Assembly: GCA_964247055.1 (NCBI GenBank)
Contig: OZ176050.1
Location: 4,402,001 to 4,466,000 of the forward strand
Reading direction: 5' to 3'
DNA length: 64,000 nt
Source: Paragordius varius
Lineage: Eukaryota; Animalia; Nematomorpha
Made by a program: the position numbers and the translations under genes. The first letter of the stretch is position 1, and every line of letters starts with the position of its first letter. The notes beneath the pieces are model-generated. The model was not told the origin of the DNA. It ran no database searches and was given only the letters and a program-made list of their open reading frames with translations. Below are positions 20,552 through 53,004 of this stretch, in pieces.

Positions 20552-21167
20552 TTAAAGCTATTTTTCAATTGAGCCGCTTAATTTTTACCATCTACCTATA
20601 AATATGGTGCTTGAAAAATTTTGATTTAAAGCGATTTTCAGGAAAACATGTAAGCCGATTCGAATATTTATTTTTAAAAGCACTGACTGCGCCCTGCTTT
20701 GGTTTCCCTTCAGTATAATCGGACCCGTGTGTTGTTTTGAAGCAATTTTTAGTTTCTTACTACGTTTAGCCCAACATCTTCAACGTTATGGATAATAACT
20801 AAAAATAATTAGGAGGAAAACTACCGCAAAAGGGTAATGTTTAATAAGCAAACTGAAATTTTTTTAAGCTCAGAATTTTTCTAGCATAACGTGCGGTAAC
20901 ATGGAAATATTTGGCAGGAAGCAATATAAACTTTTGCGACTGATGAGACTGAAAACTAATATACCATAATTTCGATATATTTATATTTCAGAATGTATAC
21001 TTAATTATTATAATATGGTTTGCACTGTGTAAGACATTCCATATTTTTATCTATAAAAGTTTACAAAAATGTCCGAATATTCAATTCATAACATTTAACA
21101 TGTTTTAAACTTTACACAACCGAACATATATTATATCATCTGCAATAGTCACATTGAGTTTTAAAAT

Positions 21168-24100
21168 ATGACTACTACGGCTAATTTTCATGTGTCCAAT
21201 TTGATCGACAAAGTTATTAAATTTTTAATTAAAGATGTCCTCTGTTGACAAAGACTTTAGATTTATGGCCGCAAATGATTTGCTCTTTGAATTGAACAAA
21301 GATGCTTTTAAACTTGATGATGAAATGGAAAAAAAGATAGCAAAAATGGTGTTAAAACTTCTTGAAGACAAAAATGGAGAAGTTCAAAATTTAGGGATTA
21401 AATGGTTTGATTTTTTAATAATTTTAGTCTGGTTCCTTTAATAATGAAAGTTAAAAATGCTCAAGGAGAATTTATTCTTGAAACCCTTTGTTACAACATG
21501 TTATCTGAAAATGAAGAACTTAGGGATATATCTAGCATTGGTAAAATTACTTATTAATTAAAGGATTAAAATCTACCCTAAGAACCTTCACAAATCAGTC
21601 TTTGAGTCATTATAATTCTTCTTTCCAAAAACTATTGCCTCATTTATTAAAAAATTTACAAAAGGTAAAAAATGTTTATATCATAGGAAACCGATGCATC
21701 CATTCAATTAGAAGTTTTGGACATAGTAAACGAACTTATAAATCTATTAGCAAGTATAATTTTTTGTTGTAACCCAAGATTATATTTTAATAATTGAATT
21801 TAACTTTTATAATTTACATTCTGTATTTTATGGTTTTTTTGTAAAATATCTTTCCACCCTTTTTTTCCGAATTAAATAACCTTACCTTTTATATGTTTAC
21901 GCAACTAGCAATGAATTATTTTTAATTATTTCAGTGGGTTTAGCCCGCTTAGTAAGGAAATTATTTTTCTCAAAAAACACTTAAATATATTTCATTAACA
22001 AATTCAAGATTGTATTTTTTTACAGATAAGGAAGGCACACGCCTGTGCGACGTTGTGATTAATAGAATATCACTATCATAAAAAACAAATAACCATATAA
22101 AAATTAGTTTTTTTAAAACCTCCTAGCATTATGTATTTATTTATACATTATGTGATTCAAAACTTTATTATTAATAATATTTATTAGTTACTGCAACCAT
22201 GACAGAATCATAATATAATTTTATATAAATTTATTTTGCCAATATATCTTTGTATTTAAAGTCAATTTATGAAATAATTCGTTAAAATCCTTTACAATTT
22301 ATTTTCCCCGATAAATACCCTTTTTTCAATGTTATTCTACGAAAATACCTGCCATTGTGGAACCAACAATATATATTTGTTAGTATTTATAATTAAAGGA
22401 TCAATAAAGATTTTTTTATTTTTTAGCTAACATCCAACATCAACAAAATTTGGTTGAAGAAGCGCTTATACCTCTCTTATCGGTTCCAAGAATGGCCATA
22501 CGAAAGCGCAGCATAGTTGCATTGAGTAAGTTTTATTAATATTTTGAGTGATAATTAAACAAAATATAGGGACATTTTTTAATTGATTTTGGCTCTTAGA
22601 AAATATTTAATATAATATAAAAATAAATCTCCAATTTCATATTATTAATTTTTATGTTTTTGGATATTTATTCATTAAGAATTGAATTGGTATTTTAAAT
22701 CATTATAGAGATAAAAATTCTCTAATGTATAGTATGAATTAAATTGCTTCATATTAATTTATGATCACAATATGTTTTTTTTGCTAATTTTATATAATAT
22801 TTTGGCAAAAATTGGTTTAGTTATGGACCACATGACAAATTTATTATTTATTATTATTTATATTAATACATTTTACAGATTATTATAATTTATGTTGAGG
22901 TTTAAGTATTTGAAAATTACAAAACAAATAAGATATTCCCAATAAAAATTTTACCATTTTTTAAGATTAATTTCATTTTATAAACATTATTATTCCTCTA
23001 TTAATAATTTTAATCGACATTTTTTTATCCATATACGTGCCTTATATGACCATCATGTGTTTCAATTTTAAATGATGTTTTTTATTTTACTACCAAACGT
23101 TTTTCTATAATATTAACAATAAATATTTTATTACGATAGAGTGCAAGAACGGTTTTAACGGTTAAAATGATTTGGAGATTAGAGCATTAGTCTCATTTTT
23201 TTGTAGTTAAAAATTATTATCATAGTTATCTTAAGTAATCTTTGATAGAATTAACTCCATACGGCTATTTGTAATATCATATGCATATTTGTCCCATAAT
23301 TTGCTAATAATGATTTGATCCAAATGATAATAAACCGGGCGTTTTTAAAATCACTCGTTCTTGCAACAAATGCTGCCATATATTAGATTTAGGCAGGACC
23401 ATTTATATTAAGATTCAAATCATAAATTTAACTCAGGCTAAGCATAACTTATAAATAGGTACAACAAGATAATTAACGCTTGTATAATGCAAATATCAAA
23501 CATTTGTAAAATATGGATAAACTTAAAACTATTGAAATCTATTTGAAACAAACTTTTAGTCGAGAAATTTAACACGCTTATTGGTATGTTGATTTCTTAC
23601 CTTAACCATAAATTAATCTCTCTTTTTCTCGTGTTTAACAGGTTCTCTTATGCAATGGTGTACTCATCCAATGTATGATGGCATTATACAAGAATTGCAT
23701 AATCGTTTAGGGCAAGCGGGAAAAATGAAAAATATTTCCCTACTTTACACTTACATTCAATGTTTAGGTGCTATCAGGTACATTTTCCTTTAGTTAAATT
23801 ATAATTTTGAAGAATTCAGTTTTATATGAAAACATACAGTTAAACAAAATCATATTTCAGTTTTTATGCAATTTTTATGATGTTCTCTGCTTTATATTCC
23901 TCAAATATTTCATTTGCTTTTTATATACCTGTTGCAATTTATTATATAATTTTTAGTATTATTTAAATAGCGAGGGCGACAACAAAATGTTTTATATTAT
24001 TACCTGTACTAAAAGGTAAAAAATCGTTAATTTAAACTTTTATTTTTATATATCCATAAGCTCATGTGTTAAATACGAAATGTAGTAACCATTTAGGTTT

Positions 24101-27100
24101 AACCCCATATAAAATAATCTTAATTATTTCTAGGCTTCATAAAGTAAATTTTTTTAAAAAAAATAGCATTATTTTCATTACGAGATTTTAAGATTTATTA
24201 TAAAATTTTTACTTTGGATTAATTTAATTTAATTTTACATTAATAGTCGAAGTACAGGTTCAAAACTAACAAATTATTTGCCCATGTTCATGCCATACCT
24301 TTTACAGTTATGTGAATCTCATTCCCTTAATCATCTTTCCACGGCTGAAGTCTACCATGATGCTCTTTCAAAGTATCAATTTTTATTTTCATAAATGCTA
24401 AAATCTTGCATCATTGCTAACATAATTTAATCTATACCATTTACACTTCATATTCACCCTTGAACATTTCAAATTCACTCTTGAACAATTCAAAATCACC
24501 CTAAAATAAATTATGTGTTTTTAAAATTTAAAATTACCTATATTTTTTATAATATTCAAAAAATGAAATTTTATTTAAAATTAAAACAATACTGAAAAAA
24601 TAAACTATGCCATAAAGATATACTTCATATTAATATGAGGTATATTAGCCCGAAATACTTTTTATTTTTGAATTTGAATTGTTCAAGGGTAAATGGTATA
24701 AAATGGGTTAATTTTGTTAACAACATTTAATTCATTAATAATTAAAAAATATTAATTCATTTTTCTAGAGTTCCAGTTAATCAAGTAGACAGCATTTTTC
24801 CACCTAACGCCAATACTGAAGAGTTGGATGAATTAATTGACACAACTTTACAAACATTGGATTCCCTTATAAAATCTTCCGGTCTAATCATAACACCTGC
24901 CACTAATGGTTTAACGATTAAAGCACCATTGAATAATATTCAGAACCCTAATCCAATCTCACCTCTGCACCCTTATTTACCACAAGTTATAATATTTTAA
25001 AATTTAAAATTTGCTATATTGTCATTGCGTTAACTACACTATCCAAATATTATGCCAATTGTTCGCGATTTATTTTTGATTACATGGTATTAATTTTATA
25101 ACGTCTTATAAACTCTATTTTATGTTAAAATATTATTAATGTAAATAAAACCAAAAAAGGCGGCAAATTAACTGCAATAATACCAATATATCGATTCCAA
25201 ATGTTTATATATTTTATGTTATGATAATTAGATAATACATATTGCCCTAATATATTTGAGTTATGACCCAAATTACAATTATGGTGATCAAGATGATGAT
25301 CAAAGTAATGAAAACCAAAATTTCAGCAGCAACGGAGATAAAACCGCAATAGGTTCTGATATTATTTTATATTTTGACTAAAGGTTAAATAATTTAAGGT
25401 AAAAAACATATAGAGGTTTTATTTTTTGAAAATTTAAGTACTTTTACATTTAACTATTGTTTATGTATAATCCCCATGCTTAAATCTTTATTACTTTTTC
25501 AAATTATATGTGGTTTATACCGTTGTGTTGTGTTATTTTATTTTTATAATAATAGCAAATGGAACTGACATCGAATATATGGATGAAGGCGATGACAATG
25601 GTAATTATGTTATTTGCTTTTGTAGCTTATCTTTAAAAAAACAAAAAAAATTTTATTTTTCCTTTTCCCCTGTTCAACATAGTTAAAAATAGACCTAACT
25701 TTTATAATTTCTTGATATTAATGGTTTTATTTTACGAATGATTTTGGTTAACAACTAATAAGATTGGAAGAATGTTAAATTTCTTTATTATTTTTAAATC
25801 CCGATTTTCGTAGATGACTTTGTTTACGTTTCGTTAGCATTATTATTAAGGGGTAACAACAGTATTAATGTTTTAATTCCAGGAATATTAAGATTATATA
25901 AATATTTTTCCGTTGTAATTATAATATTTATTGATAAATTAGCTAAATTATTTCAAACTCTCTAGCTTTCATTCCTGCGACTTTAAGAACAATTTTGTGT
26001 TTTAATGGGTTTTGCGATATACATTTAATATAATTGTTTCAATTTACTCACATCTATTGATTGGTTCGTTTGCAAATTTGCATTATAATTTGTTGCAACT
26101 TATTAGATGGGGATCAATTTTCCCCACCTTACGAGGAATCTGACCTTTCTGAAAATGATGATGAGGATGATCTTAGTTGGAAGGTTCGACGTTCAGCTTG
26201 TAAATGCCTTAAATCACTCTTGGAAACGAATGGTTTAATATCTGACATAGATCTTAACAATCAGTTTTATCGGATTTTGGCAAAATCAATTATGTCAAGA
26301 TTTAAAGGTATATATATAAATATATATATATAATATATAATTTTTTATTTATAGGATAAACTGCTAATTATTTGTATGGTTTTTTTTATAAAAAGTTAAA
26401 TGTATATAAGTAAGTAATTTTCGTATTTTATTACTCATGTTTAACACAATGTAATGCGGTTAATTACAAACGAAAAAAAGTCATATTTATGTAATTTTTT
26501 CCCTACAATAACCTAACAGGCCCATATAACCCGTATTATTGCTCTGTTACTTATTATGTAGCTTTAAAAAATCATTTATAAATAAGTTTTTCACCTATCT
26601 ATTTATGTTTTGTGATCGTAATAAATAATAGTAAAATATCTCTATAAAAAATATGAAATGTTCTTTTATTTATAGAACGTGAAGAAAATGTCAAATTGGA
26701 TGTTATAAATCTTTTTTCTTGCCTACTTGCGCGAGTTTATTCAATGTTACAATTACCACTCTCAGCGGTTGAAAGAGAAAACCACTTATTGTTAAAGGAA
26801 TGCACTCATTTAAACAATAAGTAATAATTTTTAAACCAATATTTCTCGGCGTCTACTTGAAAATATGAACAAATTGAATAGTTTTTGTTTTGCTATTGAT
26901 AAAATGATTCTTAATTGTTTAAAATCATTACAATACCCGTATTATTTAATTTTATATATATATATATATTTGTAATTCATTGGAACTATTTTTATATATT
27001 CTTTTTCTATTCGTTTTTCGATTTTAGCAATAATTTCAAAGAAGCTCTTAAACGCATGGAAATAAATGTTTGTAACTATGAGGATATATGTAACATATTG

Positions 27101-30100
27101 AATCAAGCCCACAAACTGCTGTACAAAAAGAATTTTAAAATACCACAAGCTACATATCACTTGATATCGAAACTTACTGACATTATAGAAATTATTTTCA
27201 AATATTATAATGCAAACATTCTAAGGAATGACACTGCGTTTCGGGATAAAATGAATGCGATAATTAAAGCAACTCTCTATACAATTAGGTAGGATTTTAT
27301 ATATTTTGGATTCATATTTTATTTGGTTATGATTTATTGGTGCATGTTAAATGGTTTTATGTTACTAATTGATATAAAATTTGGCAAGTTTACAGTAAAT
27401 TGAGTAGTTGTCTATATTTTTTATATTGCCTTAGTTTTCGGTACTCATAATTGTCAGATATATATTTAATATAAATTCCTTTTATTGAGATGTTTGATTT
27501 ATTCCAAATATACTGGTAAATGCGCTAAAAACTATCTATGTCCGAAAACAATTACTTGACCCTATCGATCGAAATAAATTAGAAAGGGAACAAATTTTAC
27601 AGTTTTTTTACATGATTGTAATCAAGAAATTTCCAACTATTAAGCCTGCGGTTGAAATATAAAATATTTCATGATGGTATATAAAATAATATTTTAATCA
27701 TCCAAACATTTTAAATAATTAAACCGTATTATCTATATAAGAAAATGATATTAGCTATCAAATAGATCCAACTTAAATGTCTCACAACAAAAATCATAGG
27801 ATTTAATTTTTTAAACAAACATTATTTTAATATTTTATCTATATGTTCACAATATTTACGTAAATTCTTAATATAAAACATTTTAAAGACTTCTTTTATA
27901 TTTCTATCCATATTTAAATCTTTTTTATTTAGGGGGCGTAATTTGTGTTTAATTTCATGGAAAATACACTCAATAGGGTATAATTGAGGTGAATATGGTG
28001 GCAAAAATATTAAATTTTTAAATTCCTTATTTCGAGACGATGAATAAGAGCATTATCTAAAATTATATAGGATGATGAAGGTATTATTTAAAAAATTCCT
28101 GTAAAAAATGATATATATCATCCCCGTTGTATGGGTCAGATTTATATTCATATTTTATCATTCCGTTTTTTCCAATCATAACCAATATTTTTACCTCTTG
28201 GCTTGCTTTTAATTGTGAAAAATTCTCCCTTTTTACACCAACAATATAGATTAAGACTGTAATCATGGATTCCAGTCTCATTCATATAATATATGTCACT
28301 GTGCAAAAACTGTAAAACTTCCTATGCATCGTTTTATTGCGATTTATAGGCTCAATCTGCGCTTGTTTACGAACAAAAGAATATTTCTTAAGACATTTAT
28401 ACAATGTGGATTTTGAGATTTTTAATGAATAAGGAATATTATCTAAAATATCATCAATTGTTATATTATTATTTTCTTTTAAAATATTTTTGATGGCTTC
28501 CTTTAATTTACAATTATCTAATTTTGGCTTGCGGTCGCTTTTTTGAGGAGGTGTAACGTATAAACGCCTGCGATATTTATATATTGTGGATCTAGACATT
28601 TTTAAAATATTTATATTGTCCGTCATGGTATTATTTGAAGTGGACGGATTACTGAAAAGGCTCTTGGCAATTTCATTCTCTTCATTTGTCCAACTTCCTC
28701 TGCCTTAATCAAACATTCACAAAGTTATTATTTGTGATAGTTGAATAAACATTATATTTAACAAAAGGAAGCCATCTAAATATTTTAAATGAAAATAATA
28801 ATATAACGATTGAAGATATTTTACATAATATTCCCTATTCAAAGTGTCAAAATCTACTTTAAATGTCTTAAGAAATCTCTTTTGTTCTTTAGCAGGCGCA
28901 GATTGAGCTTATAAATCGCAATTAAATATTGCATGGGAAGTTTTACAGTTTTTGCACAGTGAATATTATATGGATGAGACTGGAATCAATGATTACAGTT
29001 TTAATTTATATTGTTGGCGTAAAAAGGGAGAATTTCCCACAATTAAACGTAAGCCATGAGGTAAAATAGCTATGATTGGAAAAAACGGAATAATAAATTA
29101 TGAATAATCTGACCCATACAATGGGGATGATATATATCATTTTTTACAGAAATGTTTAATAATAACTTCATTCCTATATAATTTTAGATAATGCCCCTAT
29201 TCATCGTTATCTCGAAAAAAGGAATTTAAAAATTTAATTTTTTCGCCACCATATTCACCTCAATTAAACCTTGAGTGTATTTTCCATGAACGCGCCCTAA
29301 ATAAGAAAGATTTAAGTATGGATAAAAATATAAAAGAAGTCTTTAAAATGTTTTATAATAAGGATTTACGTAAATATTATGAACATTTTGATAAAATATT
29401 AAATAATGTTTGTTTAAAAAAATTAAATTTATTGCCTGAAAATTCCTATGATTTTTGTTGTGAGACATTTAAGTTATATGTATTTTTTGATGTTAATATC
29501 ATTTTCCTATTTAGATAATACGGTTTATAGAAATTATTTAAAATGTTTGGATGATTAAAATATTATTTTATATACCATCATGAAATATTTTATATTTTAA
29601 CTGCAGGCTTATATGTAATAGTTGGATATCTCTTGATTACAATCATGTAAAAAAACTGTAAAATTTGTTCCCGTTCTAATTTATTGCGATCGATAGGGTC
29701 AATCAGTAATTGTTTTCGGACAAAAATATTTTTTAGGGCATTTGCCAGTATTTTAATCTATTTTCTCGATTATTTATTGTTTACAATTGTTTATCATTAT
29801 ATTGATGTTTTTTTCATATAAATATTTAATTAAAAATAATCATTGCTTCTCTTTTACATTAATTTTTAATTGATATTGTAGTTGTATTTGATAGGCAGAC
29901 GAATAGTAGTTAATCGTCTGCTTAATGAGCTTATACGGTAAAATGGTTAAAAGCAGAGTTCCATCTTCTTGTTAATTGAAAGTTGTCACACGTAACAATA
30001 TATTTAAGAGAGTTGATGATATGTAAATTAATTTAAAAATACAGTCAGTGTAGAAGCCCATTGGATTGTTGATATTTTTGATTTAACCTTATTATAAGAT

Positions 30101-33100
30101 TATTACGCATATGTAAGAAACATTGTATAAAATAGAATTTATATGATAAAAATTTGAAATATTATTATTTTTTAATTTACATTCAATTATATGACAGGGT
30201 GATTGGAGTTAATGATGTATAAGGGAAGTTTTGCCTTATTAATTAAATAAAATGCGAGATTTATTTAATTCTATTCATATATCTTAATTAGTGTTTAATC
30301 AAAAATGGTTTATTTCAAAGTCGGTGAATATCAAATGCTATGTTATAGTTTTAAAGCCTCTTAAATACATAGTGAACATTTAGCCGACTAGTATATAGAG
30401 GGTTATTATTTATCAATATTATAGATGAGGGCCTCTTCATATCCTATTATTTTTCGGTTTTATGTCCGTATAAAAAAATTTGTACGCATATTAAAAATTT
30501 AAATCTTTTGATATTTACAATATGTTTGTTATAAAAAAAATTTGTCTGTTAGTTAAAAATTCCATCGGATAATTACAACTACTTAGATTTCAACAACACA
30601 CTCTATGGTTATATGAGATTTACTTAATCATTCCTAAAACATTATATAAAATTTTTGTAGAAATTCACAGTGTCCTTCAGGCGTTCGCATTGAAGCAATA
30701 CAGTTTTTGCACAAATTAGCCCTATTTGAAATGCATTTGAAACAAATGGATTATAAAATTGTACATATGTTTCGTCGCATTGAATTTCAACAAGTATTTT
30801 TTAAAATTCAAGATATATCATACGATATAGCTCAAAAATCTAAAACTTATTTTTGACTGTTTGTAAATTAGAGTATATGTAATAAAAATATCTTCAGTTA
30901 AAACAAAAAGTTTTTTATAATTACAAATCACTTTTTAAATTTTTTATAGATTTTTCAACATATTGAATTTTTAAATTTTTTGATAACAGTTTATTTCCGA
31001 TTGCCTTAACGAGAAATCGCCCAAATTCTTGGCAGATTTTTTCGCCCTTTTGAAAGACCTAATCAAATCTTTATCGCTTTATCAGGATGTGGAAATTGGT
31101 ATTTTAATAGTTTTATTTTATTTTTCACCTTTCTAGGTATAATTATTCTTTATGATTTTTGTTTTGCGAATGCTTTTACACAGCATTTAAAATTTGTTTT
31201 TTTTTTCATTCTTTCAATAATTAATGTTTAATAGACGAAAAAATATGAATTAACCTATTTTTTTTAATGGTTTTGAATTTGCTACTAAGTTAATTTTTTA
31301 CTGACGCAGTCTTTAGCTCTTTAAGAATATTATTATCATGAAAGAACTGCATGGTACTTAACCGATACGACCGTTTAAATGGTTTAATACTTTCAAAATA
31401 TATCAAAATAATTAATGAAGAAGGGATTATAACTTTAAAATTTCACAATATTTTTATTTAATTTTATGCCATCATTTAATGTAATAAACATTTTTTTGAA
31501 AAGACTTTAAACCCTATTTGCTACATACATTTGATGTAGCTAAATAACTATTTTGTATTTATACTATTTCCTATAATTCCTATTGAGAAAAATTAATTGT
31601 GCAAAAAGATTTTTTTAATTCCTGTAATTAACAATTTTACTTTCATGTTAGGACGTGATATTCCCCTTTATCTTAACTGGGTTCATCAATGTTATAATCG
31701 ATCCTCTGATACCGAAGTCAAAGAAAAGGCTATAGCTTTCATGTAATGATACAGCTTTTATACTTTACAAGACTTATTAAAAATTATATCACATATTTTG
31801 ATTTAATTTTATGTTTTGATAGTTGGAAAATTGGTTACCTAGGAAAATAAATATAATAACAGCTGAAAATAAATGGCTTTTTATTTCAACTCTGGAAGCT
31901 ACAATTCATTTTTTCATTCCTAAAAGGCACATTTTTTAAGAATTAATTTATCAATAATTTTTATATAAATTGTATTTTACAAATTTATACAGGGTAACCG
32001 TACTACATTACTATTCCCCCAAAATAAAGCCGGACATGATAGAGCTTGTGTTAAAAGCATTACGAGATCGCATAGTTAATGAAAGTACACGAATATCGGC
32101 CCTTCGATTCTTAATATTTTATTTGAAATCTCCTAACACAAAAATTGTATTCCCTGGATTAGATGTATACTATATTTAAATTGTAATATTTGTAAAGAAA
32201 ATGCCAAGTTTAATGTACAATGTAAGTGAATATATATTCCTAGTTTTCCGAAATATTGCCAGATATGATTAACAGACATAAAAACATTATTATTAACTAA
32301 AATCAAGAACAAGCAAAAAATACATTTTTTATATGCACTATTGTTAAGTTAATAATTTTGCTCTTGCTGTAAATGCTATTTAGCATAATTATATAGTTTT
32401 TACCTATTTATATTTTCAATTATTTACCAAAAACGCTTCTTTAAATCAAATTGTATCAAAATATATTAATATTAAATATTTTTTATTTATTTCATTAGTT
32501 AGAGCTATTACAAATCCTAGCTCAATACCTTCAAAAAAATGATGCTACTCTTAAAACGCTTTCTTTGACTGCAATGTCACATATCTTGAAAAACCATCAA
32601 CCAATCCTCTCCAAAACTAATACTGAAGAATATAAACCTTTAGCAACGTTTATAGGAGATAGCCTTGTTAATAACCAATTACCTCGATTACTGCTGGATA
32701 GTGATACACGAATCCTACAGGTTATTTTTTATTCTTTGGATAAATGTTAGAATATTCAAGATACTCTCCATAATCTTATTTTTATATAAAATTTATTGCA
32801 TTATTATAACAATTGAATTTTTATGTAACATTGTCCGTCAAACAGGAAGGTTAATTGAAAATTTAATATTTTACTATATCATTTAATTATTGAAGATTAT
32901 AGAATAAGTTAAAATCGAGCGTCTTTGTGCATATAAATTTTTTTGCTTTTGGTGAAATATGTTTTATATATACATATATATATATATATATTTCAAACGT
33001 TTTAAGAACTAAATATTTGTTGTAGTGTTGAAAAAACTTTTCGCGTAAGCTTTTAAATAAAAACAGATCTACCTTGATTCAGATTTTTAATCAAATATAC

Positions 33101-36100
33101 TCGTTTTTGTCTAATTATGCCTTGGCTTTCTGACTAATATAAAATATCTTAAGCATCCTTTCCAAAACTCAATCAAAATAAAATCTATTATATATGGTAT
33201 AAAAATTGTGATATAATATATATGGATTTTTTTCCAAAATAATGGTAATTTTAGTAAAGGCTTCTTATGACCAAATCACTAAATTTCAACCTTTGATCCC
33301 TCTAAAAATTAAAGATTTTGAAAATAGCATTTGGAAAGATTCTTTTTTGACTAAATATGGAAAAAGGCAGGAATTTATAATTCTAAGCTATCTTGATGTA
33401 GTTGGAAACCTAAGACAAAAATTGTTTTAACGGGCCTCTCTATATTCATATCTCGTCTCGGTTTACAAATCAACCCTGTCTTTACGTGTACAAAATTTAT
33501 TTTTTAAATCTTCGCAATTTTATAAAATTCCGAATTTATTTTAGCCATATAGATTGGAATTGAAACTTATAAATATTTATACTTTATTAATTGAGTACAA
33601 TATATTAATGAATACGTTTTTATTACATTTGCAACAATTTTATGTATAATTTACTGATATAGTTGACAATATATTTGCTTACTGTGATATTGGATCGATA
33701 CCCGTCCACTATATCACAAGCTTGGAAACTTTTTGAGCATAATGATTATTCCAAATCGTCAAATATGGAACATAAAGCAAATCTCAATATATTTTCGGGA
33801 CTACATCATATTATATATTCAATACCATTGCAAAGTAAAATAACATACGCATTAATAGTTTCGAACAAGAAAAAAGTTATACATATTAATTTTTCTGGTT
33901 TTCGATTTCATTTTTTATGAAAGATACAAACAAGTATATTGAATATTTTACGAATTTTATTTTAAAAAATTATGAGGACATGTGCTTTTTTAACACACTT
34001 TTTAATTTGACCCGTATATAAATAATACCCGGTTTGACCGCTGATAAAAACAGCCACTTATGTTTATAAGCAGCCATCTAATGTGAATATGATTTATTGA
34101 GATTGGTTTTAAAATTTTGATTATGTAGAAACATATCTTATAAAATATGGTAATTAAAATTTTTAAATTTTTATTTTGTAAGTTTACGTGATTATATATA
34201 AAAACCATAAAATGTATTCAAACCGTTTGTCATCCCTAAATACATATATTTCTGCTTTAAATTATTTTTCTCATCTCTTAGGTGATATACTTAAATGGAC
34301 TCTGGTGTTCTTTCAAAATTTTGCTGCGAAATTCGAATCTCCTATGTTTGAAGATATTGTCAAGGTATAATTTTTTTCTTTTACACTATAGCAGTATTTA
34401 ACTCAACCATTGGATACAACTAACTTTGATGGAAAAAAATTATCCTCGCCTATTCCTTCCTTTGTAATTATTTGATTTTAATATATATATTCTTTTTTTG
34501 TGTTGTAAATAGATATCTAATTAATTTTGAAACCAAATCTATAAATATTTTCTCATTTTTAGAAAAATAAAGGGTATAAAAGAAATACTTTATCAAACAA
34601 TCATAAACGCAATTTTATATTTTGGGGCTATTTTTAGTTACTAACTGTTTTTTTTGCTTAAAGGTGTTTCAAAATATGGCTAAAATAACCGTAGCTATGA
34701 TATCTAATCACCATGATTCAAAATGTTTACCCTTTCTCCACCAATGTTTGAGCAATTTTTCCCAACTCACACCTCTTTTAATACAACACTATCATCATGC
34801 AGAAAATAATGATTATTCAGATAAAATTGATCAATTGTTATACACGTTATACAGTTTGGGTGAATTAATGGCCCAACGAATTTGTACCCTAAGTAATGTA
34901 ATTCAAGTTTTTCACAACAAAGAAAATTCCAAAACAAATTTATTACAACAAGACCCAATGTCAGTTTATACAGAACATATTCAAAAACGACTGGCAGAAT
35001 TGTACATAGCTACTCTCTCCTCAAACAATATTGCGGCCAAAAACAATGGTGAAACACAAAACTCAAATAATATGAATGTTGATGGTATTGAGACCAATTT
35101 GGGAAAACAAAATCCTTTAAATGTTTACACAAATAGTAGAAATGGAGATTTACGCAATGCCATTGCTTTTACTATGGGTGAGGACACATATTTTTGATTT
35201 GATGGTTAATTTGTTTTTATATTGATTGGGAAATTTATCTTTAATATTAATTTATGTTCCTAATTATCCTTCTATTTTCGAAGATATGGTACTTTTTACT
35301 TTTATTTATAATGGTGTTTAAATAATATATATTTGATATAATAGGGAGTTTTATTACGGATGATTCAATCGGTATTATTCCAACTTTAACTGAAGAAATG
35401 TCGAGTATGCAGGCTAATCAAGCAATATATCAATTGTTTTATCTTTCGGCTTTTAATGAGGTATAATTATTGGATTACACTAGACAATTATTTCTGCCAT
35501 TCAAGTTTTTTGCATTTTATGATATTTACTAATATTTTAACAGTAAATTTGAAATAAAAATTTTAATTCGACCTAAGACTTTTGTATAATTTGATTTTTT
35601 GAGTATGCGCCAATGTTTTTCTTTGAAAATATATACAATAAATGCCCATGTGTAATATATCATTCGAAAGAGTAATGAAAATTTTATAATATGCATACTA
35701 TTATGTTTTACATCGATTGTTAGTATTGGACAAGGAAGCGACAAACGCGCGAAGCGAGAGCGTTTTGTAAATTAATATATTTTTAAAACTAATGTATGAA
35801 AATAGCTCTCAAACTTCGTCTAGATGGCAATGAAAGTCGAAAAATAAAACAAGAAGTTTTTTTGATCTAAACACTTATTTATTGTTTTTCAAAACAGCTA
35901 TTTTTGAGTTTTTTGTTTTTTAAAACAAAATATCATCTCATCAATATTAATTTATTTTTTTTTAGGAAGCTTATAATTTCATAATTTCAAAAACTAAAAA
36001 CAAGTTTAAATTTTTTTTATTTTTTTACGGTTGAGTAATAATGAGTTATTTTAAATTATATTAAAATCGAAGTATAATTATTGCCATCCTTGCAACATTT

Positions 36101-37731
36101 TACCCTTCTTCTCTTTAAATTAAACTAGTATTTGATCAATTGTGACCCAATTCAAAATCAACCTTCAACTGATAACAAGAATACTCGCTTGGAACTTATT
36201 TTAGATGCTCTTTTGAACCAATATTTCCCTGGTAAAATTATCAAATTATTTTCTAAAAAAAATTTTTACTTCCATATAATTTTTCGTAAAAAATGCTAAA
36301 ATGAGATGCGAATGTAAAATTTATTTTTATATTATTAGCTTCTGAAATCCAAAACATTTCTACCGAACCTGTATTTATGTCAAGTGAAAATATTTCATCA
36401 GATTATTCTCGATTATTTTGCGCAAAACTTTGTTCTTGCCTTAGTCTTTTATGTTACTTGATACCAAATCCGACCATCTCTCAAATAACTGCCAAAATAC
36501 ATAAATTATCGATGCAATTAACTCCTACGAATTCAGAAGTCAAAACAAATAATACAAACTATAAATTAAATATCTTGATACAATCTATCATACAAAGTCT
36601 CACCCATGAAACTAATCAAGAAGTTTGTATTGATTATCTATTGTTTTAAACTATACTTTTTACTTATTGTTAATTAGTTTTCTCGTTAATTACAGTCATG
36701 TATATGTAGAATTGACAGAAATTCGTTTTTAAATGATTATAATTTGTTTTTAAATGTTTTAATGTTTGATATGTCAACTTTCAACATGCGCATTTTAAGC
36801 ATTAAAATAATAATAGCTTATTTATTATAAACAATTAAAAACAAAGTTAAATCAATTAAAAACGTATATCTGACAATTCTAGACATACATGACTATAAAT
36901 TGTGCAACAAATTTTACCCTTGAAAATATCTTGCAATTTTTAATGATTATACAGATTTTTTTCAAATTTGATCATATTTTATGTCACACCCATTCAAAGA
37001 TTCCTAATCTATTGTATAAAGTCTTCAAATAGTAAAATTTTAGAAAAATTTTATATAATCGTGCAAAATTATGATCGATGATCTAGATTGGGTATCGACC
37101 TTCATATAATTTTTAAATATAGATAAATTTATTATTACAGTAAAAATTGAAAATGTACGGACAAAACGTAAAAATATAAAGACAAATATTTTTTTTAAAA
37201 GACAACCCTACTTAGATCTAGATTTAATTGAATTATAACTCATATTTAATATTGCGTGTATAATGATATATATTATTAAGACAATGATTTTTATATTTTA
37301 CAATTGTAATTATATAGCTTATAGAGGAAAAATTAAGGTTTTTAAAAGTATGATTGTCTTTTGAATAAAAAAAATTAGTCTTCATATTTTTACGTTTTTC
37401 CCGTATAATTTCAAGTTTTACTTTATATATTATAGAAATGTTTCGCTGTTTGCTTTTATAAAAATGGAGATGCCGTTGGCTTAGATGAGGATATGGAACG
37501 TTCAGAAAATGGCCACAAATTTGCTAATTTTCTTCAACATCAAAGTATGGAAAACAAAAATTTTTTTATAATTAAATCATATCGATTTATATATATATAT
37601 ATAATTAAAATTTCCTACTGTACGATGATTTTGGAAATTTATCTTACTCTAGTTAAATATTTTATTAGTTATTAAAATATCTAATTCTTCATTCAGTTTA
37701 TTTTAATTAACAAGTTGTATTGGCATCTAGT

Positions 37732-37780
<49 letters not shown>

Positions 37781-39865
37781 TAATGATAACGAAATAAAAT
37801 TTTTTGTTCTGGATTCTTTTATAAATGTAAAAATAAAAATGTTTTATAAATAGATGAATATAATCAAGAGTTGCGTAGATGCCTGCCTTTAATTACTTCA
37901 TACTTTATGAACTCATCCAAAGACACAAATAATAATGATGGGAAAAAAGGCACGGAAAAATCACCGGCTAATCGTCGTTTCTCTGTGGAAGTTTTAAAAT
38001 TAGTCCTTAATCTCATTAATCATTGCATATACAATAAATCTACATTTTTTTATGAACAAAATCATCAAAAATCCGTAAATATTAATGCTAATTCCGATTT
38101 AATGATTGAAGAACCAAACTTGCCGGTAACAACAAACGTTTTATCATTCGTATTTGAACAAACATCAATAAAGGTATAAAATTTACCTTATTTTTTAGAA
38201 TTATTGCTTAAATTGGTTAAATGTTTTATACATTTCACATATATAAATTTATAGAAAGAATTGATTAGGGAAGTCGAAATGGGCCCTTTCAAGCATTCAG
38301 TAGATGATGGTTTGGAATTAAGAAAGGTTTTTTTACATAATTGTTTGTTTATATATACTTGCAATTTCATAGTTAAAATCAATATTTAATAAAAAATTAT
38401 TTTAAATTGTTAAGTTAATCCATATAATTTTTGAATAAAATAGGCAGCATATGAGTGTTTATTTGCCTGGATAGAAAACCCCAATTTATTTGTGCTGGTT
38501 GACCCAACTTCATTCATTGATTATTTGGTTCAAGCCATAAACGATCATTATGACATAAAAATGTTGACTTACATTGCATTGTCATCCCGCTTACATCCTT
38601 TATACACGTCTAACGTGCTTATTAAATGTAAAATTTTATGCTATTTAAATTTAGTTTATATTAATATAGGCTATTTATCCCTTACATTCACCGTTGAACA
38701 CTTAAAATTTTTCCTAAAAATAAAATGTTTTTTGGTTAACACTTATTCTTTTCACATTTATTATTTTTAAACGTTTTATAATTTAGTATTAATAAATATA
38801 GTAATATTTCACATACATAATTTATTTTTAAGGTAAAAGTGTAAGAACTTGAAGCGTCAAAGGTGAATTTGAAGTTTTGAGGGGTGGGTTAGGTTTAATG
38901 TGTAAATGCTGTATCTACTGCAACATCAAAATCCAATTAAGATTTTCATGGTGCTATTGTTATTGGGCCTACGAGTAAAAGTTATATCAAATATGGCACA
39001 TGTGATTTGTTGCAAAATAAAAACTAAATGTTATTTCTTATAAATTATTCGCCTAATTACCAAATGTTAGCCCAATATTTTAGAGATAATAATAGTTTAG
39101 GCTAATAATGAGCAGACGAATAGGGCAACTTTATGAATTTTCGCCAATCAAAAATCTTTAATAAGATTGCGTAGTTTAATTTAGATAAAAATAGATATTA
39201 AAAGTATCAACTCAAAAAAATGTCGCACCAAAAAGATTTATCTTAAGTCTAAATTAGATTACAGTATTATAAAGACCTGCAAACTAATTTTAAAAACCTT
39301 TTACGGCTTAAGTGTGTTCGTAAAAAACATGTAATTAGAAAAAGGTCCATTATATATACGATTTTAGACGACGCAATCTAAAAGTTGTTGTGTTACCATA
39401 GTTGGGCAATTCGCAACACGATATGTTGAATAATTTTTTCCTTTCTTTTTTGATACACTACTGTATTGCAAATTGCTCTACTATAGTGTGAAATAAGAAA
39501 CATTAAAATACATACTGTATTTATACATAATGTATTTTTTTATTTCGTAGGTTTGGACAGATTATTGAATCCTATCAAAATGGTGTTGAGCGCTACCGTT
39601 AAACAAAATGCCGTAAAGCAAGAATTCGAGAAACAAGATGATTTGAAGCGATGTGCATTGCGAACTGCATTCAAATTGTTACATTTACCTGGCGCAGGTA
39701 TCATTAATTACGATATTTTTTGGAAATTTATATGATAATCATTTTTGAAATTCGCTTTTAGATCAATACCCGTATGTTCAAGACTTTCTAAAATGGATCA
39801 ATGCGAAATCAGATCTGAACGTAATTAAAGAAGGAATTTTAAAAGAACACAATATTAATTTATAA
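21168..39865 (+). CDS. CAND1: Cullin-associated NEDD8-dissociated protein 1, 32 exons, ~1,600 aa; exons 21168-21212, 21235-21404, 21428-21540, 21564-21664, 21687-21753, 22427-22525, 23642-23777, 24247-24372, 24769-24985, 25232-25352, 25556-25600, 26107-26307, 26676-26820, 27028-27288, 30661-30793, 30990-31098, 31652-31742, 31993-32164, 32499-32720, 33663-33834, 34282-34364, 34392-34463, 34664-35177, 35345-35460, 36129-36231, 36339-36622, 37436-37544, 37854-38173, 38255-38326, 38444-38627, 39551-39697, 39762-39865
   Basis: Hallmark peptides [78 protein letters not shown] and [12 protein letters not shown]. Every junction is GT-AG and phase-consistent, giving one open frame. The middle exons are divergent and less certain. 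Confidence 0.95.
24433..24700. mobile_element. MITE family A copy in a CAND1 intron
   Basis: TATACCATTTACACTTCA ... GGGTAAATGGTATA; the interior matches 2601-2943. Confidence 0.85.
27513..29748. mobile_element. Tc1/mariner-IS630-like transposase pseudogene arranged as a ~2.2-kb fold-back in CAND1 intron 14
   Basis: TA|CTGGTAAATGCGCTAAAAA ... TTTTTAGGGCATTTGCCAG|TA. The minus arm (~28626 to 27822) encodes an HTH-like N-terminus, [12 protein letters not shown] and [11 protein letters not shown]. The plus arm (~28768-29400) encodes [14 protein letters not shown] and PPYSPQLN. Both arms are disrupted. Confidence 0.92.
35485..36030. repeat. Dispersed TE-derived repeat (family C); an inverted copy lies at ~62020-62575
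   Basis: GCGACAAACGCGCGAAGCGAGAGC (~35738) vs GCTCTCGCTTCGCGCGTTTGTCGC (~62275), with colinear flanks over ~550 bp. One terminus reads CACT(A/G)GACA. Confidence 0.8.
36693..36895. mobile_element. TA-flanked MITE
   Basis: TA|CAGTCATGTATATGTAGAATTGACAGA ... TCTGACAATTCTAGACATACATGACTA|TA. Confidence 0.8.
37138..37423. mobile_element. TA-flanked MITE
   Basis: TA|CAGTAAAAATTGAAAATGTACGGACAAAACGTAAAAATAT ... ATATTTTTACGTTTTTCCCGTATAATTTCAAGTTTTACTT|TA. Confidence 0.7.
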
Positions 39866-39906
39866 TATATACATACATAAGTTGTGAACATGATTGTCAA
39901 AATATT

Positions 39907-39918
39907 AATAAATTTAAT
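39907..39918. terminator. Back-to-back candidate polyadenylation signals: AATAAA on + for CAND1, ATTAAA on - for TMEM230
   Basis: AATAAATTTAAT lies in the 68-nt gap between the two stop codons. Motif only; such motifs are frequent in AT-rich DNA. Confidence 0.45.
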
Positions 39919-39933
39919 TATGCGATGATTCAT

Positions 39934-40311
39934 TTAATTGAAATCTGGTATATCGCGGTACGAATATCCACGTTTTTGCATGAATGCGTTATAGGCTACA
40001 AAAACATAATATCCTCCTGGAAGTAATAAAATTACTCCTATAATTATTAATGGCCATGTTCTATCATGATACTAATTTTAAAATTATATAAACTTTGAAA
40101 TCAAAATAGCCAACCATAAAAAGTATCCCAAGAGCAGAAAATAATATACCAAATACAAATAAAACTAATGCCAAAGCTATCGGTTTCCATGGAATATTAT
40201 GTCTTTCATCTCTCCACTTAAAGATTATTTTGAAAAAAAGACCTGAGTATCGGCATATTCATCATCGGAAAAGCTCTGTTTTTTCCGAATCAATATTTTT
40301 GAGGTTTTCAT
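39934..40311 (-). CDS. TMEM230: Transmembrane protein 230; exons 40311-40243, 40216-40094, 40071-39934; 109 aa
   Basis: Spliced translation ...FSDDEYADTQ-WRDERHNIPWKPIALALVLFVFG...-YHDRTWPLIIIGVILLLPGGYYVFVAYNAFMQKRGYSYRDIPDFN matches TMEM230 motifs (IPYKAIALA, LPG.Y, RGYSYDDIPDF). It is missing from the ORF track because of two micro-introns. Confidence 0.93.
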
Positions 40312-42571: not shown

Positions 42572-43758
42572 ATGAGCGTGGGTTTTAAATTTTTATTACC
42601 CAATGCTTTAAAGGCTATTTTCTTTATACTTCTGCCAATAAATACCCCAGAATATAATTTGGTAGCATATAAGGTACTCACTGATTGGAACAATGGTAAC
42701 GAAATTTTCTATATATAGTTATGGAGGGAATATATTTGTTACGAAATAACATTGATCCGTATTTATCTATTTTTTCTGAGGTACATCATATATAATTTTG
42801 AGAATCCATTAGATCTTAATTTATTTAAAATCTTGGGAACAAAAATATTGCCGTATTTATTTTTGGTATCCGAATTTAAAACATTAGATTATACAATTAA
42901 TAACCTCATATATTTGGTTTACCATTGGAAGTCGATTGCATCATAATTATATGTCTTTACTGTATTTAAAAAACTTACAATTTTAGATATATTTTTAACC
43001 CTTTTGTATTGCTCGATTTGTACATGTTAAACACTTCGGTATTTGTTCAATTCTTATATACCGCGCTACTATTTCTGTCATTATATGGTAATATTAATTT
43101 ATAAATATATAAAACATTAAATCCATAGTTAAATATATAATTTATATATTATAAACTTTATATTTGTAAAAGTTTTAAAAATAAAATTACTGTGACTTTA
43201 AAAATTGACAACATAGTCACTTAACCCAAATTACTTCGTTTTTGGAACTTATGAAATTTTATATATTTATTTAAAAAATATTTTCTCTGAGTTAAAATTA
43301 CTTTTAATTAAGAATTTAATACAAATTTTATTAATAGACTTTCAATTTTTGTCTTTTTCATATAAAAATTTATCTCATTGATAAAAAAATATAAATAGGC
43401 TATTTACTTCCGGCCTGCCTCATCATTTCAGTTTTAATGCTTCATTCAATTAATTGCCTTATCCTCATTCTACCGGTCGGATTATTGATTTACGCATTTT
43501 ATCAAGCGTCTACTAAGAGCAAAGGTTTTCAATGATAATGTTTTATATTAAAAATAGTTAAATCCGTGAATAAGAATATTAACAGAAAAAATATATTTTT
43601 TTTATAATAATTTATATTTATGTCCATATTTTAAATTATTTTATTATCCATTGGTATAAATCTAAAATAATCCTTATTTTTTGTAAATTTTCTCAGGTCC
43701 AATTCATATACTTTTCTCAGTAATTTTTAACAATGTTTAGAGATTTATACTTGTTTTT

Positions 43759-48766: not shown

Positions 48767-53004
<4,238 letters not shown>

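Follow-up and report, generated by a model that had tools for sequence, protein, structure and literature searches.

The window analysed here is a 64,000-nucleotide (nt) stretch of DNA from Paragordius varius (contig OZ176050.1, positions 4,402,001 to 4,466,000). It carries an orthologue of CAND1 whose coding sequence is interrupted, close to its start, by four segments of 22 or 23 nt. These segments are very probably U2-type GT-AG introns that have been reduced to a minimum of 22-23 nt in a functional nematomorph CAND1 gene, and as such they would be removed from the CAND1 mRNA. The comparison that bears most directly on them is with the CAND1 gene of Gordionus sp. m RMFG-2023, which is taken as G. 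montsenyensis and is called Gordionus below. Ultra-short introns are a known feature of some animals; what appears to be new is their occurrence in this lineage, as a distinct 5' class in a gene whose other introns are long.

Micro-introns at the 5' end of CAND1

The start of the predicted gene is arranged as follows.

21168-21212, plus strand: CAND1 exon 1, 45 nt (42 nt in Gordionus)
21213-21234, plus strand: putative micro-intron 1, 22 nt, phase 0, GTTATT..TAAAG
21235-21404, plus strand: CAND1 exon 2, 170 nt (same length in Gordionus)
21405-21427, plus strand: putative micro-intron 2, 23 nt, phase 2, GTTTGA..TTTAG
21428-21540, plus strand: CAND1 exon 3, 113 nt (same length in Gordionus)
21541-21563, plus strand: putative micro-intron 3, 23 nt, phase 1, GTAAAA..TAAAG
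21564-21664, plus strand: CAND1 exon 4, 101 nt (same length in Gordionus)
21665-21686, plus strand: putative micro-intron 4, 22 nt, phase 0, GTAAAA..CATAG
21687-21753, plus strand: CAND1 exon 5, 67 nt (64 nt in Gordionus)

The donor end of every segment is GT and the acceptor end AG, and no length is divisible by three. Without splicing, no frame of 21168-21753 stays open for more than a few dozen codons, while excision of the four segments gives an uninterrupted frame that starts with the ATG at 21168 and continues to 21753, with the junctions (marked by a slash) NLIDK/MSS, GIKC/LVPL, ISSIG/LKS and LQK/ETDAS. Exon 2 alone, a peptide of 56 amino acids (aa), matches human CAND1 (PDB 1u6g) over the full length of the exon with an expect value (E) of 1.5e-19.

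In order to compare this arrangement with other ways of splicing the region, we enumerated every stop-free path through 21168-21753 that uses no more than six GT..AG introns, each 15-60 nt long. Among the 871 paths obtained, the four-intron path had the top score against the Gordionus orthologue (478, with 62% identity over 156 columns and one gap column). A dynamic-programming spliced alignment of the full Gordionus CAND1 protein against 21100-40000, which allowed any GT..AG intron of at least 15 nt and was given no prior coordinates, recovered these four introns to the base and placed exon 5 at 21687-21753. A preliminary description of this DNA, made from the sequence alone, had assigned the gene to CAND1 and had reported four introns with these coordinates, sequences, lengths and GT-AG ends, whose removal restores conserved CAND1 sequence and each of which shifts the frame if retained. 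On all of these points our results agree with it, the identity of the gene being borne out both by the exon 2 match and by the alignment along Gordionus CAND1.

Comparison with Gordionus and other CAND1 genes

The best full-length relative in a library of 1.84 billion proteins was the Gordionus CAND1 (XP_065316406, assembly GCA_954871325.2), whose annotated protein could be mapped exactly onto the fetched DNA; RNA-seq was produced for the published annotation of that genome. With exons and introns given in alternation, beginning with exon 1 and ending with exon 5, the two genes start as follows.

Gordionus: 42, 41, 170, 37, 113, 44, 101, 43, 64 nt
Window: 45, 22, 170, 23, 113, 23, 101, 22, 67 nt

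Each of the four micro-introns matches, in both codon position and phase, an intron of 37-44 nt in the annotated Gordionus gene model, the homologues of micro-introns 1, 2, 3 and 4 measuring 41, 37, 44 and 43 nt. The three exons that lie between them, exons 2 to 4, are identical in length in the two genes (170, 113 and 101 nt), and the arrangement is therefore not the product of chance GT..AG pairs.

The two genes are thus orthologous, with the same intron positions and phases and with a layout in which long introns come only after a 5' run of minimal ones, but they differ in two respects. The minimal introns here, at 22-23 nt, are roughly half as long as the 37-44 nt seen in Gordionus, and there are four of them in a row rather than six. 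The fifth and sixth minimal introns of Gordionus, of 39 and 42 nt, have homologues of 673 and 1116 nt in the window. In both genes the minimal introns are gathered near the start (1001-1962 of the Gordionus locus, 21168-23777 of the window). The lengths of later CAND1 introns are not conserved: near the end of the gene, introns of 81, 923 and 64 nt in the window have counterparts of 7668, 612 and 2858 nt in Gordionus. No other called gene lies within 10 kilobases (kb) of Gordionus CAND1.

Intron positions were compared through a four-way protein alignment of the window, Gordionus, a bird and a rotifer, with no cnidarian or dicyemid CAND1 included. By alignment column and phase, the window has 16 intron positions in common with Gordionus, one with the bird and none with the rotifer. 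The position of micro-intron 2 is also found in the bird CAND1, where it is occupied by an intron of 794 nt (K/C-LGPL, phase 2). Of the 14 bird positions only one agrees with one of the 28 positions of Gordionus CAND1, which implies near-complete turnover of CAND1 introns on the lineage leading to nematomorphs. In a maximum-likelihood tree the CAND1 proteins of the window and of Gordionus were grouped at 100/100 support, with the caveat that the window branch is long (2.24), identity is 34% and composition is skewed in both sequences; we have weighed the introns above the tree. The G+C content is 26% in the window and in Gordionus. By sequence, by the tree and by the 16 intron positions, the nearest relative among the CAND1 sequences compared is the nematomorph Gordionus, and a nematomorph origin of the window is very probable. 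A myxozoan or dicyemid origin, which PMC13644364 brings to mind, was considered and rejected on the tree and on the 16 positions in common with Gordionus against one with the bird; it is not credible that a cnidarian would have 16 derived positions in common with Gordionus when a bird has one.

The whole CAND1 gene and its long introns

Beyond the fifth exon the gene continues for about a further 18 kb, and its first long intron follows directly.

21168-39865, plus strand: CAND1 orthologue, modelled with about 32 exons from tblastn and spliced alignment to Gordionus, ATG at 21168, stop codon TAA at 39863-39865
21754-22426, plus strand: CAND1 intron 5, 673 nt, the first long intron (Gordionus homologue 39 nt)

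Homology found by tblastn and spliced alignment spans residues 6-1515 of Gordionus CAND1, and the reading frame is maintained for about 4.4 kb of coding sequence through the terminal stop. The model is approximate, and it is unreliable in the middle (exons 10, 17, 21 and 23-25), where the protein is weakly conserved; Pfam searches with single short CAND1 exons gave no match. Modelled introns 5-18 measure 673, 1116, 469, 474, 78, 240, 203, 527, 368, 207, 3423, 746, 250 and 334 nt, and introns 19-31 measure 942, 156, 581, 338, 143, 246, 302, 867, 309, 81, 117, 923 and 64 nt. As modelled, the micro-introns form a class of their own at the start of CAND1 and are not typical of its introns as a whole, because only four of the 31 introns are shorter than 30 nt, the other 27 range from 64 to 3423 nt and not one falls at 24-63 nt.

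While the preliminary description linked introns of this size to genomes that are intron-compact overall, that description does not fit this genome, in so far as it can be judged from the 27 long introns among 31 in the model of one gene. With only four of the 31 introns of this gene under 30 nt, the median lies well away from the value below 30 nt that marks an ultra-short regime. The long CAND1 introns, among them one of 3.4 kb that carries transposase remnants, indicate that the genome is not compact overall.

The remnants in the 3.4-kb intron occupy 27513-29748, lie on both strands and are of Tc1/mariner or IS630-like type. An open reading frame (ORF) at 28282-28626 on the minus strand matches HTH_Tnp_IS630, and related peptide fragments at 27822-28004 (minus strand) and 29240-29518 (plus strand) suggest an inverted duplication. 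An element resembling a miniature inverted-repeat transposable element, whose inverted ends are 26 nt long and which contains sub-repeats of 21 nt, is also found inside a CAND1 intron, at 24443-24694. In sequencing run X1 the summed contig depth is about 2,000,000 in the bin 24349-24545, compared with about 800 in the flanking bins, and the element therefore belongs to a family in thousands of copies.

Other micro-introns in the window and their splice signals

Two further genes in the window contain segments of the same kind.

40217-40242, minus strand: putative TMEM230 micro-intron, 26 nt (gene at 39934-40311)
40072-40093, minus strand: putative TMEM230 micro-intron, 22 nt (same gene)
42696-42718, plus strand: putative micro-intron 1 of a PIGU-like gene, 23 nt (gene starts at 42572)
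42781-42802 or 42759-42780, plus strand: putative PIGU-like micro-intron 2, 22 nt
42866-42887, plus strand: putative PIGU-like micro-intron 3, 22 nt
42962-42986, plus strand: putative PIGU-like micro-intron 4, 25 nt

In TMEM230, a spliced ORF of 109 aa requires both the 26-nt and the 22-nt intron, and the last of its three exons matches the Pfam family PF05915 (TMEM_230_134) with an E of 4e-7. In the PIGU-like gene, only spliced paths keep 146 codons open. The PIGU label was taken over from the earlier description and has no confirming database match, Pfam searches with the single short exons of this gene having been blank.

Taken together, the ten candidate micro-introns of the window all begin with GT and end with AG. 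Their lengths (22, 23, 23, 22, 26, 22, 23, 22, 22 and 25 nt) form a narrow mode that lies entirely below 30 nt, and their G+C content is 9-27% (n = 10). The third position is A in six, T in three and C in one, and position -3 is T in six, A in three and G in one. The splice motifs are thus reduced to GTa...AG, and there is no room for a polypyrimidine tract; for the four CAND1 introns the preliminary description had already pointed out that such a tract has almost no space and that the donors are degenerate. An A is present at position -8 in eight of the ten and at position -7 in seven, between T-rich runs. These motifs agree with what has been described for myxobolids and Dicyema, GTa...AG with a few A residues ahead of the acceptor, although this is a small sample on an AT-rich background.

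The four CAND1 micro-introns very probably share their four ancestral introns with the Gordionus introns of 37-44 nt. Deletion would have brought these ancestors of about 40 nt down to what is apparently the lower length limit of the spliceosome and, if so, the reaching of this limit would explain the very narrow range of lengths. The donor would have been cut down to GT(A/T) and the acceptor to (A/T)AG, with no pyrimidine tract, and the branch A would probably lie 7-8 nt upstream of the acceptor and about 14-15 nt from the donor, in a T-rich/AA/T-rich pattern. The introns would be recognised by intron definition and removed by canonical U2-type splicing. Since a single pre-mRNA carries both 22-nt and kb-scale introns, one spliceosome would have to handle both classes. 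The preliminary description took it to be adapted to introns of about 22 nt, which it may be; elsewhere, lineages with such introns have been found to have canonical U2-type machinery.

An alternative that we consider unlikely, but less so than those discussed below, is that these introns are poorly or conditionally spliced, with retention leading to a frame shift and decay of the transcript, so that the micro-introns at the 5' end would throttle expression rather than be neutral minimal introns. Not one of the ten lengths is a multiple of three (chance about 0.017), as if retention must trigger nonsense-mediated decay, and the micro-introns gather at the 5' ends of both CAND1 and the PIGU-like gene. 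Ultra-short introns of microsporidia are spliced inefficiently, with a median of about 25%, according to work cited in PMC13644364. However, ten introns are a small sample.

Selection, RNA runs and genomic reads

Contigs of runs X1 and X3 carry a second haplotype or strain. The eight variants listed for it in downstream CAND1 exons all fall on third codon positions, and seven of them are synonymous; introns on these contigs are more densely altered and also contain indels. CAND1 is under purifying selection and is a working gene, as the third-position, mostly synonymous variants indicate, and this speaks against a pseudogene. In the interval 23559-23729, which includes part of model exon 7, 13 differences are listed for the second haplotype or strain. 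At several sites in 21000-26900 none of the X1 contigs agrees with the window, and the assembly is therefore no mere copy of X1.

A number of observations weigh against the interpretation of the four segments as introns of a functional gene. The model has in-frame stop codons in exons 10, 17 and 25, which we regard as spurious and as belonging to poorly placed exons, and the protein is highly divergent, the 34% identity to Gordionus applying to its full length and the branch of 2.24 being its own. The RNA-labelled runs X7-X11, which bear the same species label, contain none of the sampled words of the region, and when contigs of RNA run X7 were mapped to the window none fell on CAND1. A search with exon 2 in a collection of 5.8 billion proteins found no match above 75% identity. 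The branch-point pattern is drawn from only ten introns in a genome of 74% A+T. Finally, a homology-free census of GT..AG segments of 15-70 nt that join two open frames, each 28 codons or longer, found 504 candidates, compared with 439 in the reversed sequence, and no peak at 22-23 nt; such a census is uninformative in DNA this rich in A and T. The spliced CAND1 protein of this organism was also not among the top matches of a library clustered at 50%. Run X14 was considered as a source of a CAND1 transcript of this species and was rejected, the match consisting of 51 conserved bases of a foreign CAND1 mRNA.

Some of these observations would be expected of a decaying pseudogene, in which frame-breaking insertions have GT..AG ends by chance and from which no CAND1 is expressed: no RNA contig lies on the locus, the protein is highly divergent, and there are three internal stops in poorly aligned model exons. 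We nevertheless think a pseudogene very improbable. The segments sit exactly at the positions and phases of Gordionus introns, with exons 2 to 4 of identical length, the frame is maintained over the 4.4 kb or so of coding sequence to the terminal stop, and the exon variants are those of a gene under selection. The three stops are in badly placed exons, and none is in a conserved one.

The four segments occur in the DNA of two samples. Sampled 31-mers of 21168-21760 were found in fractions of 0.93 in X1 and 0.84 in X2 (both from sample S1) and 0.72 in X4 (sample S3). We estimate that about 37% of the 31-mers of this region overlap a micro-intron, which sets a ceiling of about 0.63 if the segments were missing. 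X1 contigs cover 21197-21787 at a depth equal to that of the flanking long introns, which identifies X1 as DNA, and a contig of 172 nt in X3, from another study, crosses micro-intron 1 with no differences. The preliminary description had named the lack of these segments from raw genomic reads as a result that would speak against it, and the reads contain them.

A further alternative is excision at the level of DNA, in which the segments would be germline-limited internal eliminated sequences, as in ciliates, and would not be spliced from RNA. Their size is like that of the shortest eliminated sequences of Paramecium, some relatives (certain nematodes) eliminate DNA, and the DNA runs have no stated tissue of origin. 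Excision of this kind is less probable still than a pseudogene. The boundaries are GT..AG and not TA..TA (flanks such as AAA/GTT..AAG/ATG), the segments are homologous to conventional introns of 37-44 nt in Gordionus and, for micro-intron 2, to the 794-nt intron of the bird, and among the differences listed for the DNA runs in the 5' region of CAND1 there is no indel or joint that skips a segment. An assembly or long-read artefact, with the segments absent from the true genome, has nothing specific in its favour beyond the generic concern for AT-rich long-read assemblies and can be set aside, since three independent runs exceed the ceiling, the X3 contig agrees across micro-intron 1, and errors would not yield GT..AG units at four homologous sites.

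The preliminary description had taken the four segments for genuine spliceosomal introns, some 22 nt long, of an animal. This is the reading that we favour, and homologous positions and phases, selection, presence in DNA and the further micro-introns in two other genes of the window all point strongly towards it.

Other features of the window

CAND1 on the plus strand and TMEM230 on the minus strand converge tail to tail, with their stop codons about 70 nt apart (39863-39936), and this tight spacing contrasts with the otherwise long introns and intergenic stretches of the genome. On the minus strand at 48944-53004 there are consecutive ORFs of 211, 255 and 448 aa, the last at 51661-53004, which may be exons of one large gene. 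The 211-aa ORF contains a RING-H2 finger, and the 255- and 448-aa ORFs are asparagine- and serine-rich, of low complexity and without a Pfam match. Scans of the window against Rfam and for tRNAs found nothing.

Relation to known ultra-short introns

Introns shorter than 30 base pairs (bp), supported by Iso-Seq, have been described in myxobolid myxozoans (Hadjez et al., MBE 2026, PMC13644364), with median lengths of 27 bp in Henneguya salminicola and 22 bp in Thelohanellus kitauei and Myxobolus rasmusseni. Among the 51 animal genomes considered in that paper (September 2026), introns under 30 nt were found only in myxobolids and Dicyema japonicum, and more such lineages were predicted. The preliminary description was thus right to count dicyemids among the lineages known for such introns, although its list was incomplete in omitting the myxobolids (PMC13644364). 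Nematomorpha are not mentioned in the text of PMC13644364, introns are not discussed in the Gordionus genome preprint, and our literature search found no report of such short introns in Nematomorpha, an earlier mention remaining possible.

The broader proposition is that a nematomorph lineage has roughly halved its minimal intron, from about 40 to 22-23 nt, and represents a third independent animal origin of introns under 30 nt, as a 5' class beside kb-scale introns; we would put its chances at about even. If it is true, Gordionus would provide a close outgroup with a homologue of 37-44 nt for each micro-intron, and the lower length limit could be tested by comparison of the spliceosomes. The window would then offer a case anchored in homology from an apparent third phylum, and a paired system in which the handling of 22-nt and 3-kb introns can be studied. 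Many aligners and gene finders have a default minimum intron length that introns this short do not exceed, so that the gene content and completeness of such genomes may be systematically underestimated. If gene finders and BUSCO-type tools do miss 22-nt introns, the massive loss of universal genes reported in horsehair worms could be partly an artefact.

Of the known systems, the myxobolids are the most similar. Their introns are also animal GT-AG introns of 22-27 nt with a 5' GTa, a 3' AG and weakly conserved upstream A residues; short introns adjoin short introns, and the positions are conserved with longer introns of relatives. They differ in that myxobolids are Cnidaria in which the median intron is below 30 bp, whereas here the organism is a Gordionus-like ecdysozoan in which four of 31 CAND1 introns, at the 5' end, are of this size; the myxobolid introns are also backed by Iso-Seq, while those described here were read from genomic sequence. 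Dicyema japonicum, a parasitic bilaterian, has introns of 20-30 nt (PMC13644364, PMC6736024). Dicyemids are, however, placed among spiralians in the literature found, whereas the CAND1 described here has 16 intron positions in common with Gordionus, one with a bird and none with a rotifer, and is dominated by long introns. Outside animals, Paramecium has introns of about 25 nt and the nucleomorph of Bigelowiella has introns of 18-21 nt. Introns of 15-16 nt are known in Stentor (PMC13644364). The likeness to ciliates and to the Bigelowiella nucleomorph lies in a narrow mode near the physical minimum, GT-AG ends and AT-richness, and the absence of lengths that are a multiple of three in our small sample is reminiscent of Paramecium. 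Those systems, however, are protists or an organelle-like remnant whose introns are uniformly tiny, whereas the gene described here appears to be that of an animal which mixes tiny and kb-scale introns within a single transcript.

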